Assembly (NCBI RefSeq): GCF_006345805.1
Contig: NW_021833799.1
Span: 1-64,000 of the forward strand
Source of the DNA: Octopus sinensis
Taxonomy: Eukaryota
DNA: 64,000 nt
Direction: 5' to 3'
Part shown: in pieces, positions 11,872 through 62,622 of the stretch
Layout: each line of letters opens with the position of its first letter
Numbering within the stretch: the first letter of the stretch is position 1
The notes under the pieces: generated by a model
The model's database searches: none
What the model was told of the DNA's origin: nothing
Seen by the model: the letters and a program-made list of their open reading frames with translations, nothing else
Program-made: the position numbers and the translations under genes

Positions 11872-12333
11872 CAATTAAGGATAACTTCTTAATAAGGAAT
11901 CTTAACAAGAAATTATCAGGTAGTTAGCGTGAAAAACCTCATAAGAGAAAAAAATTCGAAAATAATTTTTTTCCTTTTGAAAATATTAATTTATATTGTA
12001 TAGAGGGCATTATTACACATAAATGCCTCACACTAAGAGGGACATAAGTCATTACTACCAAAATTTCACTAATCATACCCAATGCAGTTTTCAAAGCAGG
12101 ACATTTAAAAAATGAATTTAGTTCTATATCACCTGTGATATATATATATTTCTATATCACCTGTGATATATATATATATTTCTTTACTGCCCACAAGACA
12201 AAGGGATTAAGTCGATTACATCGACCCCAGTGCGAAACTGGTACTTTATTTATCAACCCCGAAAGGATGAAAGGCAAAGTCAACCTCGGCGCAATTTGAA
12301 CTCAGAACGTAGCGGCAGACGAAATATGGCTAC

Positions 12334-12720
12334 GGAGTGGCTGTGTGGTATGTAGCTTGCTTACCAACCACATGGTTCCGGGTTCAGTCCCACTGCGTGG
12401 CACCTTGGGCAAGTGTCTTCTACTATAGCCTCGGACCGACCAAAGCCTTGTGAGTGGATTTGGTAGACGGAAACTGAAAGAAGCCCGTCGTATATATGTA
12501 TATATATGTGTGTGTGTTTGTGTGACCCCCACCACCAGCATCGCTTGACAACCGATGCTGGTGTGTTTGCGTCACCGTAACTTAGCGGTTCAACAAAAGA
12601 GACCGATAGAATAAGTACTAGGCTTATAAAGAATAAGTCCCGAGGTCGATTTGCTCGACTAAAGGTGGTGCTCCAGCATGGCCATGGTCAAAATGACTGA
12701 AACAAGTAAAAGAGTAAAAA
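12334..12720 (+). mobile_element. SINE family A copy
   Basis: Head, short microsatellite and tail. Confidence 0.85.
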
Positions 12721-12997: not shown

Positions 12998-13346
12998 AAT
13001 GAATACGCGCACATACATTTTGTGTGTATGAATGTGTGTATGTGTGGGTGTGTGAGTGTGTTTACATACCAACCTACATATGTAGATACATATATACAAT
13101 ATATATATATATATACACACATGCATACACACATACATACATACATACACATAGGCATGCACCCATGCATACATACATACAGACATACGTACATACATAT
13201 ATACAACACATACATACACACACACACACATACATACATACATACTACACAAACATATATACATACATACATTACATACATATAAATACATACACACATA
13301 CATACATACATACATACATACATACACACATACATACATACATACA

Positions 13347-13380
<34 letters not shown>

Positions 13381-14068
13381 CATATATACATACATACATA
13401 CATACATACAATGATACATACACATACATACGTACATACACACATACATTCATGCATACATACACACACACATACATACATACATACATATACATACATA
13501 CACACATACATACACACATACACACACATACATACACACACACATACATACATATATACAACATACACATACATACACACATACATACACACATACATAC
13601 ATACACACATACATACACACATACATACATACATACATACATACATACATACATACATACATACACACATACATATACACATACATATACACATACACAC
13701 ATACATACATACATACATACATTCATACACACATACACACATACATACATACACACACACATACATACATATATACAAACATACACATACATACACACAT
13801 ACATACACACACACATACATACAGACACACATACATACACACATACATACATACACACATACATACACACATACATACATACATACATACATACATGCAT
13901 ACATACACACATACATGCATACATACACACATACATATACACATACACACATACATACATACATACATACATTCATACACACATACATACATACATACAT
14001 ACACACATACATACATACACACATACACACACACACACATACATACATACACACACACATACATACAT
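12960..14068. repeat. (TACA/CACA)n microsatellite
   Basis: Direct inspection; forms the left flank of the CR1-like LINE. Confidence 0.95.
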
Positions 14069-14413
14069 GCATACGATGACCACCACAGATCTACAATGGA
14101 AGAATTCACCACGTGTAGTTGAGGGTAAAAGAAATCGTTGAACGACAGTAAGTACGTCCAAAATTTATAAAGCAGTGACATACATACATACATAGATACT
14201 TGTAGCACACATGTATATACGTGCAGAGTGAAAATAAATCACACTATTTAATGTGACGGACTACACTGCAAAAAAATCAAAAATTTCATTTCTGTTTACA
14301 AACTTTCTCCGTGTCTATACGCACAAATACTTTTATGTATACACACGCAATATTTAAGAACAAGAATATACACATTTTCTGTCTCTACGGATGACCAGAA
14401 CCAACAGAATCGC

Positions 14414-14783
14414 ATGGTGAAATCCATAGCGGCGTGCGATAAGACTGGTCGCTGCTCTAAAATAGAACACTGCCCAGAAAATCACACCTGCCACATCTGT
14501 ACGGAACCCGAAAATACGTTCCGTAATCGCTGGGTCGAATGTGGGACATGTCTCATCTCTGTCTGCCTCCAATGTGCCACGGACTTTCAGAAGATCCCAG
14601 GCCAAAAAAAGAGCCATCATAATGCTATGATGGATAGACTCTGGAAGATGGTTCAGCTTAAATCTTGGACTTTTCAGTGTCAGGCCTGCGTGCCTCCACA
14701 ACCGACGATTGTGTCTCCCCCTGCCACTCCCGTGGAGGAGGCGGAACAGCAACAGCAGCAACAACAAAATCAACCACAACCAG

Positions 14784-14816
<33 letters not shown>

Positions 14817-15547
14817 TAGAGCAGCAGCAGCAACAACAACAAAATCAACCACAACCAGAGCAGCAGCAACAACAAAATCAACCACAACCAGAGCAACAGC
14901 AGCAACAACAACAACACCAATTGACCAGTGCGGTTCTTGCAGAACTGCAACAATCGATCTGTGCTTTAAAAGGGGAAGTAGCAGGAATAAAAGCAACCAT
15001 TCAGGTTGGACTCCACAATGAGGGGTCTTATCGGAATGCTCTGCTAAAGAACCTCCCTGTACCTGTACCTCTTGTCGCATTTAAGACCGCGGATTCTGCC
15101 ACCCATGAAGTCATTGCCATTGGGGTACCAGAAGACATGGCTGATCTTCAGGCTTTTGCTGCCAACTCAGCCAAAGACCTAGGCTGCGTTCCCCCAACGG
15201 GTGCTATCCGCCTTGGACGACCTGGCCCAAAACCTAGGCTCATCAAGTTGTCTTTTACGGACCCCACTGAGGCAACCTCTTACCATCTGGCCTCAGTTAA
15301 AGCTGGGCGGGAAAATCGGACCACCTTCCGAACACGCCCAGGCTTACCGTCCGATGTACGTCCGAAGCTACGTGTAGTGGCTTCCCTGAATAGGAACTCA
15401 GCTCTACAGGAAAGCTTCAGTCTTCGGGAAGATGGACAAATCTGGAGATTTGTCAAGACTGCTGAAACGTGGAAGAGAGATACCAGCTGGTCTGAGTGCT
15501 CTCTACCCACAATAACTAAAAAGACTACAGCAACTCAGGGAAACTAA
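14414..15547 (+). CDS. LINE ORF1p: PHD-like Cys finger, poly-Q linker, coiled coil, RRM-like C-terminus (377 aa, uninterrupted)
   Basis: CHIC...CGTC-x4-CLQC...CQAC; ELQQSICALKGEVAGIK; SYRNAL; VIAIGVPED; RLGRPGPKPRLIKLSF, all typical of CR1-type ORF1. Confidence 0.85.
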
Positions 15548-18365
15548 GCCAGAACAACCTGCCATCCTCTACACACCATCATAAACTGCGAGCAGGGTAC
15601 AAATTGTTGTCCTTAAATGCTCGCAGTTTATGCAACAAAATACATTTGTTCAACGCCTACGTCAGAAGTGTTGACCCTGACTTCATCACTGTCACGGAAA
15701 CATGGGCGCATTCCTTACTCTGTGATGGGGTTTTCAACATTACGGGGTACAACCTCTTCCGTAAGGACCGCACTACCGCCGTGGTGGTGGTGTGATGGTC
15801 TACGTTCGTTCAAATTTTTTGGTAATTCCTTGTGCCGATTTGAACGAATCACAAGAAGAAGTTTTTTTCTGTGACGTGCGTATGACCATGTCAACACTCC
15901 TGCTTGGCGTTGTTTATCGTCCCCCAAGTTACCATCGGGACACACAGCTTTGCAATGTCCTCCGAGCTGCTGCCAGGAAAACAGCCACTTATGTGTTTAT
16001 TGCAGGCAATTTCAATCATCCTGAGATCGATTGGGAGACCTTCCATTGGCCACAGAGTGCAAACGATTTTGTTGAGCTTGTGCTGGACTCAAACTGGTCA
16101 CAAGTAGTCACCTCTCCAAGAGGCGACAACACCTTGGACCTGCTCTTCACCACAACTCCTGAAGCGGTTATCAATTGCACTACGGAGGAACCTCTAGGTG
16201 ACTCTGATCATGCTATGATCATCGCCAATCTGGCTCTTGCGGGCAACAAAAACCTGAACCATCTCCAATCTGCTTCCTTCGATTGGAAGAGAGCAGATTG
16301 GAACCTGTACCACACTGAACTACAGCACCCAAACTGGCGTGAATTCTACAACTCTGGAGATGTGAATACTATACTCCAGAGTATCCTGGACTCAATATGG
16401 GCAGCATGTGCAGCATCAGTGCCACGTAAACAAAAAAGAAGAACCGCCCCAAAAGGGCAATTTGGGAAACTTCAGCGGTCCGACTTGCCAGGAGGGAACG
16501 TCGGACTGCTGAACGGGAATACAGGTTGCATAAATCAGACACCAACAGGAAGAAGCGGAATAAATCCTCCAACCATCTCAAGCAAGTGACAAAAAAAGCA
16601 GTGCTTGAATTTGAACAGTGCATAGCAGCCAATCCTGACAGCAAGGTTTTCTGGAAATATGTGCACTCAAAGCAGAGACCTCACTCTCCAGTGGGCCCTC
16701 TTCGCAACCCTCACACAAACCAGATCACTGACGACCCCAAGGAATGCGCAGAACTCATTGCCGAGTGCTATGCAAACATATTCACTGTTGAAAGTCAAAA
16801 TGTACCATCTTCACCATCACTAACAGCAAACTCCATAACAACTATGGAATTTACACCTGCAATGCTGCGACGTCACCTTCAAAATAAGCGCAACTATGCC
16901 TCCCCTGGTCTCGATGGAGTTACATACCTGCTTCTCAAACGTGGCAGGCACTTCCTTTTACACCAGCTTTCTATTTTCTTCCAGTACTGTCTCAACAATG
17001 GTGCTACTCCGGAGCAGTGGAAAACTGCCAGTGTCATTCCTCTGTTCAAAAAGGGCGACCGCACATCACCTGTCAACTATCGCCCAGTCAGTCTCACTAG
17101 CTGTATTGCAAAACTGATGGAATCGTGTGTCAGAGAAACACTCTGGAACTTCTGGAGCTCTCACAGTCTCATCCGACCCTCACAATATGGATTTGTCCCT
17201 AACTCCAGCTGCAGTGACCAGCTTGTCGAGTTCCTTGAGGACATTACTCAGATCACTGACAGTGGCTCATGGGTGGATGTTGTCTACCTTGACTTTGCTA
17301 AGGCTTTCAACTCTGTGCCACACAAAAGGCTTATGGTGAAACTCTCTGCAATGGGTGTGGGGGATGACCTTTTTAACTGGTTGAAATCCTTCATCCTCAG
17401 CCGAAAGGAGGTAGTCACAGTTCTAGGACAGCACTCTACACCATATGAGATGTCATCGGGTGTACCACAGGGATCTGTCCTTGGTCCCCTCTTGTTTGTG
17501 GCATACATTAACGACATAGATGCCAATTTAAAGAATGCCACAGTATTGAAATATGCAGACGACATCAAGCTGTACCTTGAAATCAAGAGGACAGATCCTG
17601 ATGTCTACAACTCTTTCCTGCAATCAGACCTAGACACAATGCAGCAATGGATCACAGACTGGCAACTGAAACTGGCTGTGGACAAGTGTACCACCATGCA
17701 TTTTGGGAGAAAAAACCCTGCGTTCACATACTCCCTCCACAACACTGATATCAAGAAATCCTCTTGCGAGCGTGACCTAGGCATCACTGTCAGCAGTGAT
17801 TTGCGTTGGTCAAAGCATATCTCTAAAATTGTCAGGAAGGCCGAGGGTGTCTTGGCATCACTCAGCAAGACTTTTGTTAGCCGCTCTCCAGCCATCTATT
17901 TAAAACTGTATACAGCTATGGTACGACCACACTTGGAATTCGCATCATCAGTTTGGAACCCCTATCTTGCTCAGAACATTGACCTCCTGGAATCTGTCCA
18001 GAGACGTGCAACCAAACGCATACCCTCCATCAGACACCTACCATATTCTGAGCGCCTTGTTTCCCTGGGCATGGATTCACTGAAGCTCCGGCGCTCTGGC
18101 GACGGACTTGGTAAACACCCACAAAGTTATCAACCACCTCACCAACAACAACACTGAACACCTTTTTGATCTCCATGTGTCTAACACACGTGGACATGCC
18201 TACAAAGTCAGAAAACAATACAGCTCCCATGACTTTCGGAAACATTTTTTCACGCTCAGAGTTGCTGAAGCATGGAATAAACTGCCTGCGTCAGTTGTTG
18301 ACTGCCATGACACTGCATCCTTTAAGGCCCTCATGCTTTCCGAAATCCGCCGAAACTACACCTGA
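15520..18365 (+). pseudogene. LINE ORF2p (apurinic endonuclease + reverse transcriptase), broken by three single-base indels
   Basis: APE motifs SLNARSL, VTETW, VYRPP, GNFN, SDHAMI; RT motifs YRPVSLT, YLDFAKAF, GVPQGSVLGPLLF, YADD. Frame changes near 15773 (-1 nt), 16435 (-1 nt) and 18093 (+1 nt). Confidence 0.92.
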
Positions 18366-18438
18366 TTATATATACACTTTAGATGAGTTGTAGTGCACCT
18401 GAGCACTGTACACAATTATTATTATTATTATTATTATA

Positions 18439-18620
18439 CAAACATACATACAAACAAACAAACATACATACATACACACATACATACACACATACATACA
18501 TACATACACACATACATACATTCATACACACACACATACATACATACATACATAAATACATACATACATACATACATACATACATACATACATACATACA
18601 TACATACATACATACACACA
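18439..18620. repeat. (TACA)n microsatellite, right flank of LINE
   Basis: Direct inspection. Confidence 0.95.
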
Positions 18621-19184
18621 CATTGTCATGGTGTTAATGTCCACTTTATCCAAAGTTCAAACAGCGCCTCCGCCGCCAACCCCACCACGACCACCACCAC
18701 CACAGTCGCCTCTCTGCCAGCAGGGAACCAGTTCAAACCAGTTGAGAACAAGGAATGCTGGAATGTCTCTCTCTCTCTCCTCTCTTTTGTTTTGTTTTGT
18801 TTTGTTATCTCTTTAAAACCTGTTTTTTTTTATTGTTTCTTTGTGTTTTTGTTACTGTTAGTTGTTGTTTTCCACACTGACGATGGTGGCGGCGGCGGTG
18901 GTGCCGTGGTGGTGGTGGTGGTGGTGGTGGTGGTGGTGGTGGCGGTGGCAGTGGCGGTGGTGGTGGTGGTGTGGTGGTAGTGGTGGTAGTGGGGTGGTGG
19001 TGTGGTGGTGTGGTGGTGGTGGTGGTGGTGGTGTGGGTGGTGGGGCGTGGTGGTCTTGGTGTGGGAGTGAGGATAGAGTATTTAAGTTAAGGGAGGAAGG
19101 GGGAGAATAATGAGGCTAGCATCACGTGATGTGACGGGGTGGGGGGGAGTTGTTGCTGTTGTTGTTGTTGGTGGTGGTGTTTAG

Positions 19185-19910
19185 CCCTAGGTCAGTCCAG
19201 ATCTAGACATCAAGACCTATGATTGAGGATGTTCCAGCTGTGACCAACTCATCTTTTATTCAGGCATAGTGTATCTAGGACTACATTATCCAATGTATAG
19301 TAGTTTCTATTAGAGGCTATAGTTGTTGTTGTTGTTTAGCCCCAGGTCAATCCTGTTCCAGACAGACCCATGATCAGAGATGTTCCAGCTGTGACCAACT
19401 CATCTTTTATTCAGGCATAGTGTATCTAGGACTACATTATCCAATGTATAGTAGTTTCTATTAGAGGCTATAGTTGTTGTTGTTGTTTAGCCCCAGGTCA
19501 ATCCTCATCCAGACAGACCCATGATCAGAGATGTTCCAGCTGTGACCAACTCATCTTTTATTCAGGCATAGTGTATCTAGGACTACATTATCCAATGTAT
19601 AGTAGTTTCTATTAGAGGCTATAGTTGTTGTTGTTGTTTAGCCCCAGGTCAATCCTCATCCAGACAGACCCATGATCAGAGATGTTCCAGCTGTGACCAA
19701 CTCATCTTTTATTCAGGCATAGTGTATCTAGGACTACATTATCCAATGTATAGTAGTTTCTATTAGAGGCTATAGTTGTTGTTGTTGTTTAGCCCCAGGT
19801 CAATCCTGATCCAGACAGACCCATGATCAGAGATGTTCCAGCTGTGACCATCCCATCTTACCTTCAGGCATAGTGTATCTAGGGCTACATTATCTAATGT
19901 ATCATATAAT
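19185..19910 (-). repeat. 151-bp tandem repeat, about 5 units, inverted relative of 8278-9035
   Basis: GTTCCAGCTGTGACC at 19231, 19382, 19533, 19684, 19835. Confidence 0.9.
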
Positions 19911-20104: not shown

Positions 20105-21005
20105 TTACTCTTTTACTTGTTTCCGTGCCAAACTGTGGAGTTACAGGGACATAAACACACCAACATCGGTTGTCATCAGTTGTAGCTTGCTTACGAACCA
20201 CATGGTTCCAGGTTCAGTCCCACTGTGGGGCACCATGGGCAAGTTTGTTTTACTATAGCCTCGGGCCAACCAAAGCCTTATGAGTGGATTTGGTAGACGG
20301 AAACTGAAAGAAGCCCATCGTATATATATATATATAGGTGCAGGAGTGGCTGTGTGGTAAGTAGCTTGCTTACGAACCACATGGTTCCAGGTTCAGTCCC
20401 ACTGTGGGGCACCATGGGCAAGTTTGTTTTACTATAGCCTCGGGCCGACCAAAGCCTTGTGAGTGGATTTGGTAGACGGAAACTGAAAGAAGCCTGTCAT
20501 ATATATGTATATATGTGTGTTTGTGTGTCTGGGTTTGTTCCCCCCCAATACTGCTTGACAACCGATGCTGGTGTGCTTACATCCCTGTCACTCAGCAGTT
20601 CGGAAAAAGAAACTGATAGAATAAGTACTAGGCTTACAAAAGAATAAGTCCTGGGGTTGATTTGCTTGACTAAAGGCGGTGCTCCAGCATGGCTACAGTC
20701 AAATGACTGAAACAAGTAAAAAGAGTAAACTTAGCATTTCAGCAAAGAGAACCGATAGAATAAGTACTGGCTTACAAAGAATAAGTCCCGGGGTCAAGTT
20801 GCTGCTCGACTAAAGGCGGTGCTCCGCATGGCTACAGTCAAATGACTGAAACAAGTAAAAGATAAACTTAGCGGTTCGGCAAAAGAGACCGATAGAATAA
20901 GTACTGGGCTTCCTAAGAATAAGTCCTGGGGTCGAGTTGCTCGACTAAAGGCGGTGCTCCAGCATGGCCGCAGTCAAATGACTGAAACAAGTAAAAGAGT
21001 AAAAG
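20105..21005 (+). mobile_element. SINE family A cluster: duplicated head, one full copy, two extra tandem tails
   Basis: Head twice (about 20180 and 20337); tail ends at about 20730, 20860 and 21000. Confidence 0.8.
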
Positions 21006-21333
21006 AATTAAAGAATTTCAGTTATGATAAATTAATTATTATTATTAATGACACTGAAAATATCAAAAATGATGCTAATTAATTTAATTTTTTTTATAAA
21101 AATCAATGAGTATTGAACATGTTTTCTTTTTCTGTAACTGTATACCTACTTTTGTTCCCTCCTGTATAGAGGACAAGCTTCTTTCAGTTTCCATCAACCC
21201 AATCCACTCACAAGGCTTTGGTTAGCCTGAGACTATTGTAGAAGACACTTGCCCAAGGTGCCATGCAGTGGGATTGAACCCAGAACCATGTGTTTGGGAA
21301 GCAAGCTTCTAACCACACAGCCACGCCTGCACC

Positions 21334-21399
<66 letters not shown>

Positions 21400-21469
21400 T
21401 GTGTTGTGTGTGTGTATGTATATATGTATATAGCACCAACCAATCAGGGCTGCTGCCAGCCTCCACTGG

Positions 21470-21660
21470 CACCAGTGGAGGTGGCACGTAAAAAGCACCC
21501 ACTACACTCACGAAGTGGTTGGCATTAGGAAGGGCATCCAGCTGTAGTAACACTGCCAGATCAGACTGGAGCCTGGTGCAGCCTCCTGGCTTCCCAGACC
21601 CTGGTCGAACCGTCCAACCCATGCTAGCATGGAAAACGGACACTAAACGATGATGATGAT
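21470..21660 (+). mobile_element. Family E 3' fragment
   Basis: TTGGCATTAGGAAGGGCATCCAGCTG...GGAAAACGGACACTAAACGATGATGATGAT. Confidence 0.75.
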
Positions 21661-41425: not shown

Positions 41426-41506
41426 ACCTGATTATACACACACTTTAGATGAGTTGTAGTGCACCTGAGCACTGTACACAATTATTATTATTATTATTAT
41501 TATTAT
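41426..41506 (+). mobile_element. 81-bp 3'-terminal copy of the 14070-18438 LINE
   Basis: ACCTGATTATA..CACTTTAGATGAGTTGTAGTGCACCTGAGCACTGTACACA(ATT)n, nearly identical to 18360-18438. Confidence 0.9.
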
Positions 41507-53972: not shown

Positions 53973-54167
53973 ATCCAGATTTCTGATTCCCTATTTTGCT
54001 TGCATGGACCCCTTTTGATGACTATTTTATTCTGGTCGATCCACATAGTTATCCCTCACCTTCCCTACAGTCCAGAATTGGAGAGGCACATGGCTTAGTG
54101 GTTAGGGTGTTGGACTCATCATCTTAAGATTGTGGTTTCAATTCCTAGACTGGGGTGATGCATTGTG

Positions 54168-54530
54168 TTCTGGGTTCAGTCCCACTGCATGGAACCTTGG
54201 GCAAGTGTCTTCTACTATAGCCTCAGGCTGACCAAATCCTTGTGAGTGGATTTGGTAGACGGAAACTGGAAGAAGCCTGTCGTATATATGTGTGTATGTG
54301 TGTGTGCGCATGTGTGTGTGTGTATGTTTGTGTGTCTGTGTTTGTCCGCCCATCATCGCTTGGCAACCGATGCTGGTGTGTTTACATCCCTGTAACTTAG
54401 TGGTTCAGCAAAAGAGACTGATATAATAAGTACTAGGCTTACAACGAATAAGTCCTGGGGTCGATTTGCTCGACTAAAAGGCGGTGCTCCAGCATGGCCA
54501 CAGTCAAATGACTGAAACAAGTAAAAGAGT
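54168..54530 (+). mobile_element. SINE family A (5' part replaced by another tRNA-like head at about 54085)
   Basis: B-box through tail match. Confidence 0.75.
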
Positions 54531-55754
54531 ATTCCGACATTTAGACTGGAGTGTTAACTTCAGAGAGATTTTGGCTGTTGTTTCTAGCACGTTCAGTTAC
54601 CATATACAGATTGCCGCATTGACTATTGCTTGATGTTATCGGTGGTGGTGGTGGGAGGGTATGTTGTGGTGTGTGTGGGGGGGGGGTGATTATAGCTGAC
54701 TGTAGTGCAGGCGGCGTCGGCGGCGCTGTTCCTTGTAGCAGTGGCGATGGTGGTGATGGTGGTGATGGTGTTGGTGGAGACTGCTATTGATGATGGTGGC
54801 GGTGCAGGCAGCGCTGGCGATGATGGCGCCGCTGGGGGGCCTGCGGTGATAGCCGTGGCGACGGCGCTGGTGGCGCGGTAGTTGGGAGGTTGTTGTTGCT
54901 GTTGGCGGTGACGGCGGTGGTGTTTTGTATTGCTGCTGGTGGTGGCGGCGGTGGCTAAGCCGTTGGTACAGCGCTGCTGGTGGTGGTGGTGGTGGTGGTA
55001 GTGGTGGTGATGGAGCTGATGAATGCGGAGGTGGTGACGCTGTTGCTGCTGGTTTTGCTTATGGTGATGATGGTGGCGGCAGTGGTGGTCATGGTTGTGG
55101 TGGTGGTGATGGTTGTGGTGGTGGTGATGGTAGTGGTGATTGTGGTAGTGGTGGTGGTCGTGGTGATTGTGGTGGTGGTGGTGGTAGTGGTGGTCATGGT
55201 AGTGGTGGTCATGGTGGTGATGATGGTAGTGGTGGTGGTCGTGGTGATTGTGGTGGTGGTAGTGGTGGTGGTGGTGTTGATTGTGGTGGTGATGGTAGTG
55301 GTGGTCATGGTGGTGATGATGGTAGTGGTGATTGTGGTAGTGGTGGTGGTGGTGGTGGGGATTGTGGGGTGGGTGGTGATTGTGTAGGTGGTTGTGGTGG
55401 TGGTGGTGATGTGGTAGTGGTGGTGGTGGTGGTGGTCATGGTTGTGTAGGTGGTAGTGGTGGTGGTGTTCGTACACCATCGTGAGGGAGGAAATGTCGAC
55501 GAAAGAAAGACAAGAAATCTCTCCCGAAACTCTAAAAGACGAACAGAAAAGGGAGAGAGAGAAGGAGAGAGAGAGAAGGAGAGAGAGAGAAGGAGAGAGA
55601 GAGAGAGAAGGAGAGAGAGAGAGAGAAGGAGAGAGAGAGAGACTTGTTGTCTGTCTGACATGTTTGCGGTGCCCGGATGGGTTTTCTGGTCGTCTGCTCG
55701 CTCCGTCATTTAACGGTGTCAAAAGTCTGGTATGTACGATGGAGGCGGCAGCAG

Positions 55755-56080
55755 TGGTGGTGGTGGTGACGGCGTGTTTGTGGTGATGGTGGTGGTGGTG
55801 GCGGTGGTGACGGCGTGTGTTCGTGGTGGTGGTGGTGACGGCGTGTGTTCGTAGTGGTGGTGGTGGTGGTGGTGGTGGTGGTGACGGCGTGTGTACGTGG
55901 TGGTGGTGGTGACGGCGTGTGTTCGTAGTGGTGGTGGTGGTGGCGGTGGTGATGGCGTGTGTTCGTGGTGGTGGTGGTGACGGCGTGTGTTCGTGGTGGT
56001 GGTGGTGACGGCGTGTGTTCGTAGTGGTGGTGGTGGTGGTGGTGGTGGTGGCGGTGGTGATGGCGTGTGTTCGTGGTGGT
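55755..56080. repeat. GC-rich minisatellite (GGT)nGACGGCGTGTGTTCGT inside a 54600-56450 (GGT/GGC)-rich tract
   Basis: About 10 units of variable length. Confidence 0.85.
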
Positions 56081-56642
56081 GGTGGAGGTGTTGGCGACAA
56101 CGTTTTGTGGTAGTAATAGCGATGATGTTGGCGGCGGCGAGAACGGCGGGATGAAGATGGTGGCGGCGGTGATAGTGACGGAGTTAGGAAGTGGTGGTGA
56201 TGGTGATGGTGGTGTTGGCGACGGCGGAACGTCATCGTACTGAATGATGAAGGTGGCGGCGGCCGTGTCGGATCGAGGTGGTGGTGGGGGTGGTGGCGGT
56301 GATGTGGAAAATGATTGTGTCGACGGCGAGGGTTTGCGGGGGGTGGGGTGATGTCGGTGAGGCTGGCGGCGGCGGCAGCAGAAGGTGGCAATTGTGGTGG
56401 TGGTGGTGGTGGTGGTGGTGGAGGCAGCGGCGGCGGCGGCGTGATACCACTCTTGTTTGAGAACTATTAAGTCGGGTGGTTGGTGATAAGTTGTGTCTAA
56501 ATGTGTAGAATATATATATACATATATACATACATGTGTGTGTGTGTGTTTGGCCTTTTTGGCTGAGATCAAAGTGTGTCTTTGTGAATGCGCTGACCTC
56601 TTCTAGTTGGCATTCTGAGTTCGGTACCACTGCAGAGATACT

Positions 56643-57494
56643 GGCAACCTTTCGTCTCTAGTAGACCTTTCCGTCGATTTCCGTACAAAAAACTTCTTTT
56701 TTTTTTACATATGGGCTTGCGGGAACTTTTGAAGTAATGAGAGCGAAAGAGACTAAGAGAAAGCGATTGTATGACGAGGGAAGTTCTTTTGAAGTTACCG
56801 TGCATGGGAAGCATTGATGTACATGTGTGTGTGTTTGTGGGGTGTGGGAGACAGACAGTATGTTGTGTAAGTGAAGTGCTTCTGTTAGTAGTAATGAGAG
56901 CGAAAGAGACTAGAGAAAGGCGATGTATGACGAGGGAAGTTCTTTTGAAGTTACCGTGCATGTGAAGCATTGATGTACATGTTGTGTGTGTGTGTGTGTG
57001 TGGTGTTTGATGGGGTGTGGGAGACAGACAGTATGTTGTGTAAGTGAAGTGCTTCTGTTAGTAGTAATGAGAGCGAAGAGACTAAGAGAAAGCGATTGTA
57101 TGACGAGGGAAGTTCTTTTGAAGTTACCGTCATGTGAAGCATTGATGTACATGTGTGTTGTGTGTGTGGTGTGTGTGTTTGATGGGGTGTGGGAGACAGA
57201 CAGTATGTTGTGTAAGTGAAGTGCTTCTGTTAGTAGTAATGAGAGCGAAAGAGACTAAGAGAAGCGATTGTATGACGAGGAATTCTTTTGAAGTTACCGT
57301 CCAGGGGAAGCATTGATGTACTGTGTGTGTTGTGTGTGTGTGTGTGTTTGATGGGGTGTGGGAGACAGACAGTATGTTGTGTAAGTGAAGTGCTTCTGTT
57401 AGTAGTAATGAGAGCGAAAGAGACTAAGAGAAAGCGATTGTATGACGAGGGAAGTTCTTTTGAAGTTAGTTACCGTCCAGGGGAAGCATTGATG

Positions 57495-57525
<31 letters not shown>

Positions 57526-58092
57526 TTGATGGGGTGTGGGAGACAGACAGTATGTTGTGTAAGTGAAGTGCTTCTGTTAGTAGTAATGAGAGCGAAAGAG
57601 ACTAAGAGAAAGCGATTGTATGACGAGGGAAGTTCTTTTGAAGTTACCGTCCAGGGGAAGCATTGATGTACATGTGTGTGTGTGTGTGTGTGTGTTTGAT
57701 GGGGTGTGGGAGACAGACAGTATGTTGTGTAAGTGAAGTGCTTCTGTTAGTAGTAATGAGAGCGAAAGAGACTAAGAGAAAGCGATTGTATGACGAGGGA
57801 AGTTCTTTTGAAGTTACCGTGCATGTGAAGCATTGATGTACATGTGTGTGTGTGTGTGTGTGTTTGATGGGTGTGTGGGAGACAGACAGTATGTTGTGTA
57901 AGTGAAGTGCTTCTGTTAGTGTGTGTGAAGAGACAGAGTAATGTGTGAAAGAGAAAGAGATAACTGAAATTTTTTACTCGGTGTATGTGTATATGTATGT
58001 ATATTACTTCAAAAGTTCCCGCAAGCCCATATGTAAAATAAAATATTTTTACGGAAATCGACGGAAAGGTCTACTAGAGACGAAAGATCGCC
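56643..58092. mobile_element. Non-autonomous DNA transposon, Merlin-like (GG-initiated 90-96 bp TIRs, 8-bp TSD, internal tandem array)
   Basis: TIRs 56643-56738 and 58003-58092; TSD GAGATACT at 56635-56642 and 58093-58100; 7 internal units of 157-178 bp. Superfamily is inferred from the termini only. Confidence 0.8.
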
Positions 58093-58692
58093 GAGATACT
58101 TAGTCAAGTGTCGTTTATTGGAGTCTCAGGCCTACCAAAGACTGGTGAGTGAATTTGGTAGACAGAAACTGAAAGAAGCCCATCGTAAAGTACATTCTTT
58201 TATTCTTTTATTTGTTTCAGTCATTTGACTGCGGCCATGCTGGAGCACCGCCTTTAGTCGAACAAATCAACCATAGGACTTATTCTTTGTAAGCCTAGTA
58301 CTTATCCTGTCAGGCTCTTTTGCCGAACCGCTAAGTAACGGAGATGTAAACACACCAACATCGGTTTAAATGCAGTGCCATCAGTTTAAATGCAGTGCCA
58401 TCGTCAGCTGCACAAATAAATAAATGGAATTTCAACAAGTAGGACACATAATTTTTCTTGAATAGTTTAACAGAGCAAGAAGATGGAAGAAATTCATGTT
58501 GTCGCTATTGTAGCTAAGAATAGACTACAACTTCTAAGAATCTCATGGAGCATAGTGGGGTTATAGGGTTTTAAGGGTTGTAATTCATTTCTAATTCAAT
58601 TATCTCTTTATCAACTTCTAAAACTAAGACTAGAAGACTGTGTCTATTTTTGAATAAAGGACAAGAGTGAGCTGACAGCTTATTTTGATTAT

Positions 58693-61600
58693 ATCATCAT
58701 CGTCATCATCATCGTTTAACGTCCGTTCTCCATGCTAGCATGGGTTGGACGGTTCGACCGGGGTTCTGGGGAGCCAGAAGGCTGCACCAGGCTCCAGTCT
58801 TTTCTGGCAATGTTTCTACAGCTGGATGCCCTTCCTAACGCCAACCACTCCGAGAGTGTAGTGGGTGCTTTTTATGTGCCACCCGCACAGGTGCCAGGCG
58901 AGGCTGGCAACGGCCACGGTCGGGTTGGTGCATTTTACGTGCCACCGGCACGGAAGCTGGTCGAGGCGGCACTGGCTCCGGATGGTGCTTTTTACATGCT
59001 ACCGGCACGGAAGCCAGTCGAGGCGGCACTGGCATCGGCCACGATTCGGATGGTGCTTTTTACATGCCACCGGCACGGAAGCCAGTCGAGGCGGCACTGG
59101 CATCGGCCACGATTCGGATGGTGCTTTTTACATGCCACCGGCACAGAAGCCAGTCGAGGCGGCCACTGGCATCGGCCACGATTCGGATGGTGCTTTTTAC
59201 ATGCCACCGGCACGGAAGCCAGTCGAGGCGGCACTGGCATCGGCCACGATTCGGATGGTGCTTTTTACATGCCACCGGCACGGAAGCCAGTCGACGGCGG
59301 CACTGGCATCGGCCACGATTCGGATGGTGTGCTTTTTACATGCCACCGGCACGGAACCAGTCGAGGCGGCACTGGCATCGGCCACGATTCGGATGGTGCT
59401 TTTTACATGCCACCGGCACGGAAGCCAGTCGAGGCGGCACTGGCTCCGGCCACGATTCGGATGGTGCTTTTTACATGCCACCGGCATGGAAGCCAGTCGA
59501 GGCGGCACTGGCATCGGCCACGATTCGGATGGTGCTTTTTACATGCCACCGGCACGGAAGCCAGTCGAGGCGGCACTGGCTCCGGCCACGATTCGGATGG
59601 TGCTTTTTACATGCCACCGGCACGGAAGCCAGTCGAGAAGGCACTGGCATCGGCCACGATTCGGATAGTGCTTTTTACATGCCACCGGCACGGAAGCCAG
59701 TCGAGGCGGCACTGGCATCGGCCACGATTCGGATGGTGCTTTTTACATGCCACCGGCACGAAGCCAGTCGAGGCGGCACTGGCATCGGCCACGATTCGGA
59801 TGGTGCTTTTTACATGCCACCGGCCACGGAAGCCAGTCGAGGCGGCACTGGCATCGGCCACGATTCGGATGGTGCTTTTTACATGCACCGGCACGGAAGC
59901 CAGTCGAGGCGGCACTGGCTCCGGCCACGATTCGGATGGTGCTTTTTACATGCCACCGGCAACGGAAGCCAGTCGAGAAGGCACTGGCATCGGCCACGAT
60001 TCGGATAGTGCTTTTTACATGCCACCGGCACGGAAGCCAGTCGAGGCGGCACTGGCATCGGCCACGATTCGGATGGTGCTTTTTACATGCCACCGGCACG
60101 GAAGCCAGTCGAGGCGGCACTGGCATCGGCCACGATTCGGATAGTGCTTTTTACATGCCACCGGCACGGAAGCCAGTCGAGGCGGCACTGGCATCGGCCA
60201 CGATTCGGATGGTGCTTTTTACATGCCACCGGCACGGAAGCCAGTCGAGGCGGCACTGGCTCCGGCCACGATTCGGATGGTGCTTTTTACATGCCACCGG
60301 CACGGAAGCCAGTCGAGGCGGCACTGGCATCGGCCACGATTCGGATGGTGCTTTTTACATGCCACCAGCACGGAAGCCAGTCGAGGCGGCACTGGCATCG
60401 GCCACGATTCGGATGGTGCTTTTTACATGCCACTGGCACGGAAGCCAGTCGAGGCGGCACTGGCATCGGCCACGATTCGGATGGTGCTTTTTACATGCCA
60501 CCGGCACGGAAGCCAGTCGAGGCGGCACTGGCTCCGGCCACGATTCGGATGGTGCTTTTTACATGCCACCGGCACGGAAGCCAGTCGAGGCGGCACTGGC
60601 ATCGGCCACGATTCGGATGGTGCTTTTTACATGCCACCGGCACGGAAGCCAGTCGAGGCGGCACTGGCATCGGCCACGATTCGGATGGTGCTTTTTACAT
60701 GCCACCGGCACGGAAGCCAGTCGAGGCGGCACTGGCATCGGCCACGATTCGGATGGTGCTTTTTACATGCCACTGGCACGGAAGCCAGTCGAGGCGGCAC
60801 TGGCATCGCCACGATTCGGATGGTGCTTTTTACATGCCACCGCACGGAAGCCAGTCGAGGCGGCACTGGCATCGGCCACGATTCGGATGGTGCTTTTTAC
60901 ATGCCACCGGCACGAAGCCAGTCGAGGCGGCACTGGCATCGGCCACGATTCGGATGGTGCTTTTTACATGCCACCGGCACAGAAGCCAGTCGAGGCGGCA
61001 CTGGCATCGGCCACGATTCGGATGGTGCTTTTTACATGCCACCGCACGGAAGCCAGTCGAGGCGGCACTGGCATCGGCCACGATTCGGATGGTGCTTTTT
61101 ACATGCCACCGGCACAGAAGCCAGTCGAGGCGGCACTGGCATCGGCCACGATTCGGATGGTGCTTTTTACATGCCACCGGCACAGAAGCCAGTCGAGGCG
61201 GCACTGGCATCGGCCACGATTCGGATGGTGCTTTTTACATGCCACCGGCATGGAAGCCAGTCGAGGCGGCACTGGCATCGGCCACGATTCGGATGGTGCT
61301 TTTTACATGCCACCGGCACAGAAGCCAGTCGAGGCGGCACTGGCATCGGCCACGATTCGGATGGTGCTTTTTACATGCCACCGGCACAGAAGCCAGTCGA
61401 GGCGGCACTGGCTCCGGCCACGATTCGGATGGTGCTTTTTACATGCCACTGGCACGGAAGCCAGTCGAGGCGGCACTGGCATCGGCCACGATTCGGATGG
61501 TGCTTTTTACATGCCACCGGCACGGAAGCCAGTCGAGGCGGCACTGGCTCCGGCCACGATTCGGATGGTGCTTTTTACATGCCACCGGCACGGAAGCCAG

Positions 61601-61797
61601 TCGAGGCGGCACTGGCATCGGCCACGATTCGGATGGTGCTTTTTACATGCCACCGGAACGGAAGCCAGTCGAGGCGGCACTGGCTCCGGCCACGATTCGG
61701 ATGGTGCTTTTTACATGCCACCGGCACGGAAGCCAGTCGAGGCGGCACTGGCATCGGCCACGATTCGGATAGTGCTTTATACATGCCACCAGTCCAG
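58693..61797 (-). repeat. Family E element with a 68-bp subrepeat expanded to about 42 units
   Basis: Unit GAAGCCAGTCGAGGCGGCACTGGCATCGGCCACGATTCGGATGGTGCTTTTTACATGCCACCGGCACG; period 68 (59041 to 59109). Confidence 0.92.
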
Positions 61798-61808
61798 TGT
61801 GTGTGTGT

Positions 61809-61960
61809 TTGGCCTTTTTGGCTGAGATCAAAGTGTGTCTTTGTGAATGCGCTGACCTCTTCTAGTTGGCATTCTGAGTTCGGTACCACTGCAGAGCTAC
61901 TTAGTCAAGTGTCTTTTATTGGAGTCTCCCGCCTACCAAAGACTGGTGAGTGAATTTGGC
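61809..61960 (+). mobile_element. U2-like-headed, SINE-A-related element; empty-site paralog of 56550-56642 plus 58101-58187
   Basis: Near-identical to the flanks of the Merlin-like insertion, with a single GAGCTACT at 61894-61901. Confidence 0.75.
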
Positions 61961-62622
61961 CGACATATATATATATATATATACACACACTCACACACAT
62001 AGGCAGATCAATAATTGAAGGGAAACCCATAAGAGGACATACACAGTGAATGCCTTAAGGTTGATATGCAATTGAAGATGGGGAAAAAAAGTGGGGGGGG
62101 GATATGAAGTTTCAAGCAAGGCTCTTGGTCAGAGCCCCGGAATGAGCCAGGTTTCTGTGAATAAGTCTGGGAAACTTTACTATAGCCTGGGGGCTGACTA
62201 CTAAACCCTTGTTGGTGGATTTGGTCCGAGGAAAGTACTGGGGTTAATCTGTTTGAGGAAACCAGTTCTAGGCTGTGCTCCAGCATGGTCGCTGTCCAAT
62301 GAGTGAAACAAGTAAATGTAAAAGTACCCAGATACTTGCATCTGTCTTTCTCCCTCCACCCCCTCTCTCTCTCCCCTCCCCCCATCATACAAAGACATAA
62401 CTATTGGGCGCTCACTCCCCCTCCTTTGCCGCTTGCCTTAAAACCAACAAACCCAGGAGAAAGACAAGCTAAGACAAATAAATATGCCCACCACCACTGT
62501 ATGCCTGCTACTGTTGCTTTTTGTTCATTTGTTCATATATATATACACACATATATATATATATACATACATATAAATATATATATACAAATATATATAT
62601 ACATACATATAAATATATATAC

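Follow-up and report, generated by a model that had tools for sequence, protein, structure and literature searches.

A conserved slippery heptamer at the ORF1/ORF2 junction of an octopus LINE points to -1 frameshifting as the probable route to its endonuclease and reverse transcriptase

Within a 64,000-nt stretch of Octopus sinensis DNA (contig NW_021833799.1 of assembly GCF_006345805.1, positions 1 to 64,000; hereafter the window, with coordinates on its forward strand unless stated otherwise), we analysed one copy of an APE-type long interspersed nuclear element (LINE) whose two open reading frames (ORFs) meet at a canonical slippery heptamer, G_GGA_AAC. Comparison of this junction with those of related elements indicates that the LINE family probably yields a fusion of the ORF1 and ORF2 proteins (ORF1p-ORF2p) by programmed -1 frameshifting. 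A sequence-only reading of the window had proposed that ORF1 is joined in this way to the APE endonuclease and reverse transcriptase (RT) of ORF2, and the comparative evidence supports that proposal as the probable one.

The 3′ end of ORF1 in the window copy reads CAG GGA AAC TAA. As the sequence-only reading had stated, the heptamer (15538-15544) lies in the X_XXY_YYZ phase, with GGA and AAC as 0-frame codons, and the ORF1 stop codon TAA (15545-15547) follows immediately. The -1 frame (frame 1) is shut by a TAA at 15517-15519 and is open from 15520 into the APE endonuclease, with the translation that had been given for it. Since the ORF1 frame and the ORF2 frame are both open just in a 28-nt overlap (15520-15547), a change of frame is possible solely there. 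Past the slip, the -1 frame reads ...GK/LSQNNLPSSTHHHKLRAGYKLLSLNARS, and the ORF2 leader in this frame (15544-15600, LSQNNLPSSTHHHKLRAGY) contains neither an ATG nor a stop codon. The junction in octopus is AAC UAA GCC, without a -1-frame ATG ahead of the endonuclease and without a stop/start overlap, and the indels between subfamilies in the leader are all of 3 nt. The first in-frame ATG had been placed at 15795; this was borne out in intact relatives, in which it encodes the M of RGGGVMVYVR, but not in the window copy, where that position is in a different frame from 15520. Frame 1 of the window copy stops at 15793-15795, because one base was lost at 15775.

The junction was compared with four O. 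vulgaris copies belonging to two subfamilies, between which DNA identity is 78%. The window LINE is 94-96% identical to the O. vulgaris locus L001 (subfamily A) from 14300 to its (ATT)n tail and 78% identical to L002 and L003, which together with L027 represent subfamily B. All four copies read xxG GGA AAC TAA with ORF2 in the -1 frame. The ORF2 of L002 is uninterrupted over 955 codons, and its first ATG is codon 100, past the LNARS and TETW motifs; in the octopus family there is no ATG before the catalytic motifs. The ORF1 tails have diverged around the site (TKKTTATQGN against TTGNTKILGN), and yet GGGAAACTA was the longest invariant block of the junction alignment (six copies, three lineages), GGGAACTA with a G before it being the longest invariant run despite the diverged surroundings. 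The three wobble positions needed by GGGAAACTA are unchanged although the preceding residue varies (Q or L). A protein search with the endonuclease returned three matches, few because octopus gene sets mostly omit the LINE.

For deeper relatives, proteins matching an ORF1 profile were traced back to the contigs that encode them, which yielded complete or nearly complete elements from marine metagenomes and Logan assemblies. In the intact marine-metagenome relatives, whose ORF2s are 25-52% identical to that of the octopus element, ORF2 was always found in the -1 frame. Lineage C (L024 and L025; ORF1 43% and ORF2 52% identical, both ORFs intact) reads CAG GGA AAC TAG with an overlap of 16 nt, and lineage C2 (L028; ORF1 42%) has the same CAG GGA AAC TAG with an overlap of 34 nt. 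In lineage E, recovered from three samples (L029-31; ORF2 28%, 977 codons intact), TCG GGA AAC is followed by eight codons and TGA, and the overlap is 46 nt. This G_GGA_AAC is the sole in-phase canonical heptamer of the lineage E ORF1 and lies inside the overlap; the slip site therefore stays when the stop codon moves off. The stop codon after the heptamer is TAA or TAG in the relatives apart from the TGA of L029. The sequence-only reading had named absence of the heptamer or of the -1 overlap from the family as a finding that would speak against its proposal, and no such absence was seen in any related copy retrieved: heptamer, stop and -1 phase are kept in the four O. vulgaris copies, in L024/L025 and in L028, and L029-31 keep the heptamer with the stop displaced. 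The sequence G_GGA_AAC was invariant in all nine fetched copies with this heptamer, which come from five lineages.

In further lineages the junction holds a slip site of another sequence. Lineage F (L033; ORF2 28%, 985 codons intact) reads CCA AAA AAC GAG TGA with an overlap of 19 nt; its A_AAA_AAC heptamer had been predicted from the protein tail "PKNE" before the DNA was retrieved, and the DNA agreed. Lineage D (L026 and L005), which has an ORF1 of a second type (type-2) and an ORF2 ~56% identical to that of octopus, reads A_AAT_TTT CTT TAA with an overlap of 25 nt, and L004, a decayed relative of lineage D, has G_AAT_TTT at the slip position. Lineage G (L032; ORF2 25%, 922 codons intact) reads CAG GAT TTT CAA TGA, again with an overlap of 25 nt. 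The sites are thus canonical (A_AAA_AAC, A_AAU_UUU) or near-canonical (G_GAU_UUU in L032), and those of different lineages are alike only in their tandem-slip form. Altogether ORF2 is in the -1 frame in seven of seven lineages, with 0/-1 overlaps of 16-52 nt, and across these deep lineages the slip site is both conserved and turned over. The first methionine of the L033 ORF2 is codon 159, the first ATG of the L029 ORF2 is codon 30, after LNARS, and lineage D has no ATG ahead of LNARS.

The type-2 junctions also bear on how the slip site is inherited. Lineage D joins a type-2 ORF1 that shares 45% identity with its L032 counterpart to an ORF2 56% identical to that of octopus, while the L032 ORF2 is only 25% identical to the latter. 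These pairings suggest that LINE lineages have swapped ORF1 modules, slip site included, at the junction; the slip site apparently forms part of the 3′ end of the module and moves with it. We observed that the invariant block of type-2 junctions runs ~13 nt past the slip site (AUUUUC..U.A.G.UUUUA) while the flanks are highly diverged (L026 755-780, L005 5-30, L004 609-634, L032 796-821). This 13-nt flank could be a conserved leader peptide (FS[LM][TR]xL) or an RNA element. L005 had been a candidate for a single-frame ORF1-ORF2 fusion and was rejected, as its contig begins four codons before the ORF1 stop and shows a normal A_AAU_UUU junction. A set of 18 metagenome loci found with an endonuclease profile (L006-L023, 30-46% identity) was also set aside, being too distant and in many cases decayed, and uninformative on the junction. 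Among these loci, L010 (230-1948) and L013 (33-851) belong to an unrelated LINE family in which a 2A-like peptide (LLCGDIERNPGP) stands upstream of the endonuclease in one ORF; 2A-like sequences are a reported recoding device in APE-type LINEs (PMC3708506).

To what extent chance could place a heptamer here was estimated from the elements themselves, in which in-phase canonical heptamers occur at 0.0061 per codon (41 in 6671 codons). For the 28-nt overlap of the window copy alone, the chance of a canonical heptamer is ~5%. Over the lineages it is 3-10% each, and the product over four lineages taken conservatively as independent is ~8e-6. GGGAAAC was found nowhere else in phase in the examined ORF1s and ORF2s.

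A survey of ORF1 tails gave a broader view of the site. The ORF1 profile matched 684 representative proteins, pairwise <50% identical, nearly all of them stand-alone ORF1s of 200-300 residues. About 120 ORF1 families (<50% identity) end in "GN" or "[NDH]F" tails, encoding these sites. Among octopus-type tails GN was present in 43 of 55, compared with 8.4 in shuffled tails, the others having KN or EN; among second-type tails, [NDHY]F followed by 1-4 residues at the end was present in 50 of 66, compared with 8.0 in shuffles. The residue preceding GN can be encoded by NNG in 52 of 53 cases, against a background in which 26% of tail residues cannot, and the residue preceding NF can be encoded by NNA in 48 of 48 (background, 24% cannot). 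Moreover, what unites G/K/E-N, and likewise N/D/H-F, is codon form (RRA-AAC and NAU-UUU, respectively) and not amino-acid type. The codon form and the wobble pattern are therefore as expected of selection on a nucleotide slip site and not on a peptide motif.

From these data we infer that slippage occurs and that the fusion protein is the active form. Ribosomes would translate ORF1 until GGA, paired with tRNA-Gly, occupies the P site and AAC, paired with tRNA-Asn, the A site, where a minority would slip one base back to GGG AAA. The slipped ribosomes would go on to read CUA AGC CAG... and produce an ORF1p-leader-APE-RT fusion of ~1,330 residues with the predicted junction ...TTATQGN-LSQNNLPSSTHHHK..., from which trypsin should release the junction peptide TTATQGNLSQNNLPSSTHHHK. 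Most ribosomes would stop at the adjacent UAA and release ORF1p alone. The expected outcome is a low ORF2p:ORF1p ratio, comparable to that of retroviral Gag and Gag-Pol, and the fusion could tether the enzyme to its encoding RNA through the ORF1p coiled coil. The broader proposition, that a deep and widespread animal LINE group makes its endonuclease and RT only as an ORF1p-ORF2p fusion, by -1 frameshifting without an RNA structure, is one to which we give an even chance; the group, met in octopus and marine metagenomes, would comprise hundreds of ORF1 families and ORF2s down to 25% identity.

Several observations weigh against frameshifting. No hairpin or H-type pseudoknot was found 5-10 nt past the slip site in any lineage, and a scan for stems and H-type pseudoknots gave no excess over shuffled sequences at stimulator spacing in any of them. 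Folding z-scores were ~0 save for a distal hairpin in subfamily A, and the consensus fold reached only -3.5 kcal/mol. The octopus sample is limited, as it consists of five copies rather than a genome-wide consensus. No single-ORF ORF1-ORF2 fusion protein was present among the top 150 ORF1 relatives, so that a natural precedent within this family is lacking, and the ORF2s of human L1 and SART1 are made without frameshifting (PMC5381506, PMC3894237). Furthermore, an ATG upstream of the endonuclease motifs, which the sequence-only reading had named as a finding that would speak against its proposal, does occur in some relatives: the first in-frame AUG of L024 is at LL-M-LNARS, L028 has an extra in-frame AUG 11 codons ahead of that position, and L032 reads CAAUGA, an AUGA stop/start overlap. 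Upstream AUGs of this kind are missing from the octopus family and from lineages D, E and F. Initiation or reinitiation is accordingly possible at least in the lineages of L024, L028 and L032.

The distal hairpin has a perfect 15-bp stem (15580-15594 with 15618-15632), found by repeat search and folded by RNAfold at -29.6 kcal/mol (z = -5.8). It is much stronger than the weak 5-bp stem (CCTGC 15558-15562 with GCAGG 15592-15596) of the sequence-only reading, which is indeed present in the window but is not conserved in subfamily B, and RNAfold favoured the longer hairpin. This hairpin starts 35 nt 3′ of the heptamer and is restricted to subfamily A, with one mismatch in L001; it is absent in subfamily B and lineage C. 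The stem pairs the conserved sequence coding for LNARSLC (3′ arm) with variable leader (5′ arm). Candidate alternative stimulators are the nearby stop in the 0 frame, a tract rich in C that lies 14-33 nt past the site in subfamilies A and B (15558-15577 in the window) and the type-2 13-nt flank. Because no stimulatory structure was found, frameshift efficiency is expected to be low; frameshifting, if it occurs, would be either inefficient or stimulated in some other way, and a low efficiency plausibly fits the very small amount of ORF2p that LINEs need. Transcriptional slippage was considered and rejected, the homopolymer runs being merely 3-6 nt long. A motif resembling a termination upstream ribosome-binding site (UGGGA; subfamily B reads UUGGGAAAC) was rejected as well, since the A_AAA_AAC and A_AAU_UUU lineages lack it.

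The main rival to frameshifting, which we regard as unlikely, is that ORF2 is made separately, by reinitiation after the ORF1 stop or by unconventional non-AUG initiation, with the heptamer having no function. It can draw on the AUGs of L024, L028 and L032 just described, on CUG codons in the octopus leader, and on the position of the 0-frame stop, which lies 0-2 codons past the slip site in most families and exactly one codon past it in 38 of 53 type-2 tails, as would suit a stop-dependent mechanism. Precedents exist in the UAAUG coupling of SART1 and in L1, whose ORF2 is thought to be reinitiated (PMC3894237, PMC5381506). However, reinitiation leaves unexplained why three unrelated canonical slip sequences and the near-canonical G_GAU_UUU all occur in ORF1 phase and inside the overlap of every lineage, why wobble bases are fixed, and why L029 has kept G_GGA_AAC with its stop eight codons away. 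The leaders of lineages A, B, D, E and F contain no AUG and no conserved near-cognate codon, and about one third of type-2 tails end in H or Y, the codons of which cannot end in A, so that an AUGA overlap is not available to them.

It might also be argued that the conserved bases are kept for something else, either as a Gly-Asn or Asn-Phe motif at the C terminus of ORF1p or as an RNA signal for packaging or ORF1p binding, and that ORF2 is expressed by a route that leaves no trace in the sequence. In the protein, GN and NF are in fact conserved dipeptides, and the type-2 invariant block is ~13 nt longer than the heptamer. A protein motif, however, would not fix the wobble base of the preceding codon (52/53 and 48/48) and would not accept swaps among G/K/E-N and N/D/H-F, which agree in codon form and not in chemistry; moreover, the tail around GN and NF is not conserved, and neither dipeptide lies at a fixed distance from the folded domain. 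This explanation is in our judgement very improbable. Hardly any weight can be given to an accident, in which a 1-nt deletion near the G3/A3 runs would have given the look of a frameshift site to what was once one ORF, or two ORFs in the same frame. Such events do happen in this copy, as its ORF2 carries three 1-nt indels, and both deletions among them shift to -1, the same direction as the junction; but the junction is identical in every other copy, including the intact L024, L029, L033 and L032 and the L002 ORF2, which refutes it. Programmed -1 frameshifting thus stands as the probable explanation.

The element that carries the junction extends over ~4.1 kb (14300-18437), with ORF1 intact and ORF2 broken. 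ORF1 (14414-15547, frame 2) has 377 codons and the TAA stop, and its homologues are O. vulgaris hypothetical proteins (P0001-P0003). Direct reading of the sequence revealed a Cys-rich, PHD-like zinc-finger region with four C-x2-C pairs (14435-14689), which against Pfam gave weak ZZ, C1 and FYVE matches at most; PHD-type N-termini have been reported for CR1/L2 ORF1s (PMC4120745). A Gln-rich tandem repeat of 33-36-nt units (14744-14920) was detected with Tandem Repeats Finder, and its length differs among copies through in-frame indels, those relative to L001 being of 21, 33 and 9 nt. The C-terminal half (14915-15544) is predicted to consist of a coiled-coil helix, an RRM-like fold and a C-terminal beta domain, followed by the variable tail ending in Q-G-N. 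An AlphaFold model of this half had a pLDDT (predicted local distance difference test score) of 63, and its top fold match in the PDB was the human LINE-1 ORF1p trimer (2ykp), weak at E = 5e-3, with RRM domains next. Searches of ORF1 by sequence against the PDB and Pfam gave coiled-coil noise and no real match.

The ORF2 remnant (15601-18365, stop codon 18363-18365) is distributed over four frame segments, which were delineated with Pfam and by tblastn with the intact L002 ORF2. Its APE endonuclease is N-terminal, running from KLLSLNARS at 15601 to ~16260 with LNARS and TETW near the start, and its RT is central (~17054-17731, YADD at 17552-17563); the Pfam matches were Exo_endo_phos_2 (1.5e-11) and RVT_1 (1.9e-36). 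A CR1-like C-terminal domain follows downstream of the RT. With L001 (96% identical) as the reference for indels, a 1-nt deletion at 15775 within RKDRINRRGGGV moves ORF2 from frame 1 to frame 0, a second 1-nt deletion at 16433 moves it from frame 0 to frame 2, and a 1-nt insertion at 18094 moves it from frame 2 to frame 0; L001 and L002 are open across the site of the first deletion. The window copy is defective because these three indels disrupt ORF2. It is a dead copy, and the interest lies in its family and clade. L001 is its mirror image, with ORF1 broken by a 10-nt deletion and ORF2 mostly open.

A 3′ untranslated region (18366-18437) follows, in which a six-copy alignment showed a conserved stem-loop, GTGC-ACCTGA-GCAC (18393-18406), ahead of the (ATT)n tail (18415-18437). 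The GTGC...GCAC stem-loop is kept across the aligned copies, and the tail is (ATT)n but (ATTCT)n in L024. At 41426-41503 of the window, the last 78 nt of the same family, including the (ATT)n tail, are present as an extremely 5′-truncated copy that is 97% identical to 18360-18437, and this copy marks the true 3′ end of the LINE. It represents either extreme 5′ truncation or a short non-autonomous element sharing the same tail. Apart from this 78-nt 3′ fragment the family is present only once in the 64-kb window, which contains no second junction copy. The element has no long terminal repeats (LTRs), a 5′-truncated copy of it exists, and its 3′ end is a short stem-loop plus a simple-repeat tail. 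Its assignment to CR1/L2 leans on an ORF2 C-terminal motif (LE.VQRRA..., ...RV..WN.LP) which we take to be typical of that group. Judged by its sequence, and with the ORF1 types of PMC4120745 also used, the element is CR1/L2-like and, apart from its junction, probably an ordinary member of the CR1/L2 group of LINEs. Microsatellites of (TACA)n/(ATAC)n lie on either side of it (13063-14074, ~256 units; 18436-18620, ~46 units), and target-site duplications are unreadable because both flanks are (ACAT)n microsatellite.

Elsewhere in the window, a (TGG)n tract (18884-19054) and a tandem array of 151-bp units (19167-19902, 4.8 copies, 95% identity) were observed just 3′ of the LINE. Short related segments on both strands (12302-12541, 20141-20561 and 21208-21643), with translations including ...VPRSGTEPGTMWLVSKL..., look like copies of a repeat resembling short interspersed nuclear elements. 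On the reverse strand, 1-514 holds the C-terminal part of ORF2 from a different LINE, 28-35% identical to the ORF2 of the octopus element and running past the window start. The region 54000-62000 is G+C-rich (0.52-0.59), with strong GC skew at 54-58 kb, and from 58.7 to 62 kb long ORFs are open in all three forward frames together without a convincing Pfam match; this region is probably stop-poor repetitive DNA, not genes.

The translation of ORF2 from a bicistronic LINE RNA is a long-standing open question. The documented routes are UAAUG coupling in SART1 and reinitiation or an internal ribosome entry site (IRES) in L1 (PMC3894237, PMC5381506). A 2013 review of non-LTR protein biogenesis treats coupling, reinitiation, IRESes and 2A peptides and no frameshifting (PMC3894237), a 2016 review of recoding contains no LINE ORF1-ORF2 case (PMC5009743), and recent studies of ORF1 and of the CR1 group, among them PMC4120745, are silent on frameshifts. 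Our search of the full-text literature, the scope of which excluded most subscription journals and Repbase notes, turned up no account of a LINE whose ORF1 and ORF2 meet at a slippery heptamer; closest to one came the statement on the TRE5-A and TRE3-A elements of Dictyostelium. What is new here is apparently a known recoding mechanism in a class of elements where it was not established, and apparently without a structural stimulator. If correct, it would be a fourth, retrovirus-like strategy for LINE ORF2 expression and the first well-supported example of recoding in the manner of Gag-Pol among non-LTR retrotransposons. A covalent ORF1p-ORF2p fusion would bear on the stoichiometry of the ribonucleoprotein particle and on cis-preference, for which it would offer a built-in explanation. 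ORF2 would then have to be annotated from the slip site instead of from the first ATG, and natural -1 sites seemingly working without downstream structure would be useful for studies of minimal or trans-stimulated frameshifting.

The closest mechanistic counterparts are the gag-pol genes of retroviruses and LTR elements, PEG10 and PNMA3/5, which like the octopus LINE carry an X_XXY_YYZ site in the phase of the upstream structural gene. In gag-pol, as in the octopus family, the enzyme ORF is in the -1 frame without a start of its own, and a low-ratio fusion is expected. G_GGA_AAC itself is the PEG10 site. The 2016 recoding review counts this heptamer as one of the most slippery on mammalian ribosomes (PMC5009743). 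Unlike these systems, the octopus element is a non-LTR element with a putative RNA-binding protein like L1 ORF1p in place of Gag and with no protease to cut the fusion, and it lacks the pseudoknot or hairpin that follows the site in PEG10 and retroviruses. The ORF1p of human and mouse L1 has the coiled coil, RRM and C-terminal domain that are predicted here as well, with the weak match to 2ykp, and very little ORF2p is needed in both elements; but L1 ORF2 is AUG-initiated and has no slip site, with a spacer between the ORFs in human and overlapping ORFs in mouse (PMC5381506).

Among other non-LTR elements, SART1 of Bombyx is a bicistronic LINE without an intergenic spacer, in which ORF2 depends on events at the ORF1 stop (PMC3894237), and the AUGA overlap of L032 is comparable to it. 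SART1, however, relies on UAAUG coupling with no heptamer requirement and makes separate proteins, whereas no AUG stands at or close to the stop in the octopus family or in lineages D, E and F. Drosophila HeT-A is, like the octopus LINE, a non-LTR element needing a frameshift (PMC5009743), but that shift is inside a gag-like gene of an element without RT and joins no ORF1 to ORF2. The nearest counterparts among LINEs are TRE5-A and TRE3-A of Dictyostelium, which have ORF2 in the -1 frame and are said in a review to "require a -1 frameshift" (PMC5911963), so that presumed frameshifting in LINEs is already on record there. In the passage concerned, the statement is inferred from the ORF layout and cites no slip site, conservation or assay. 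These amoebozoan elements target tRNA genes and belong to another clade, whereas in the octopus-type elements the heptamers are conserved and interchanged across many animal LINE families.

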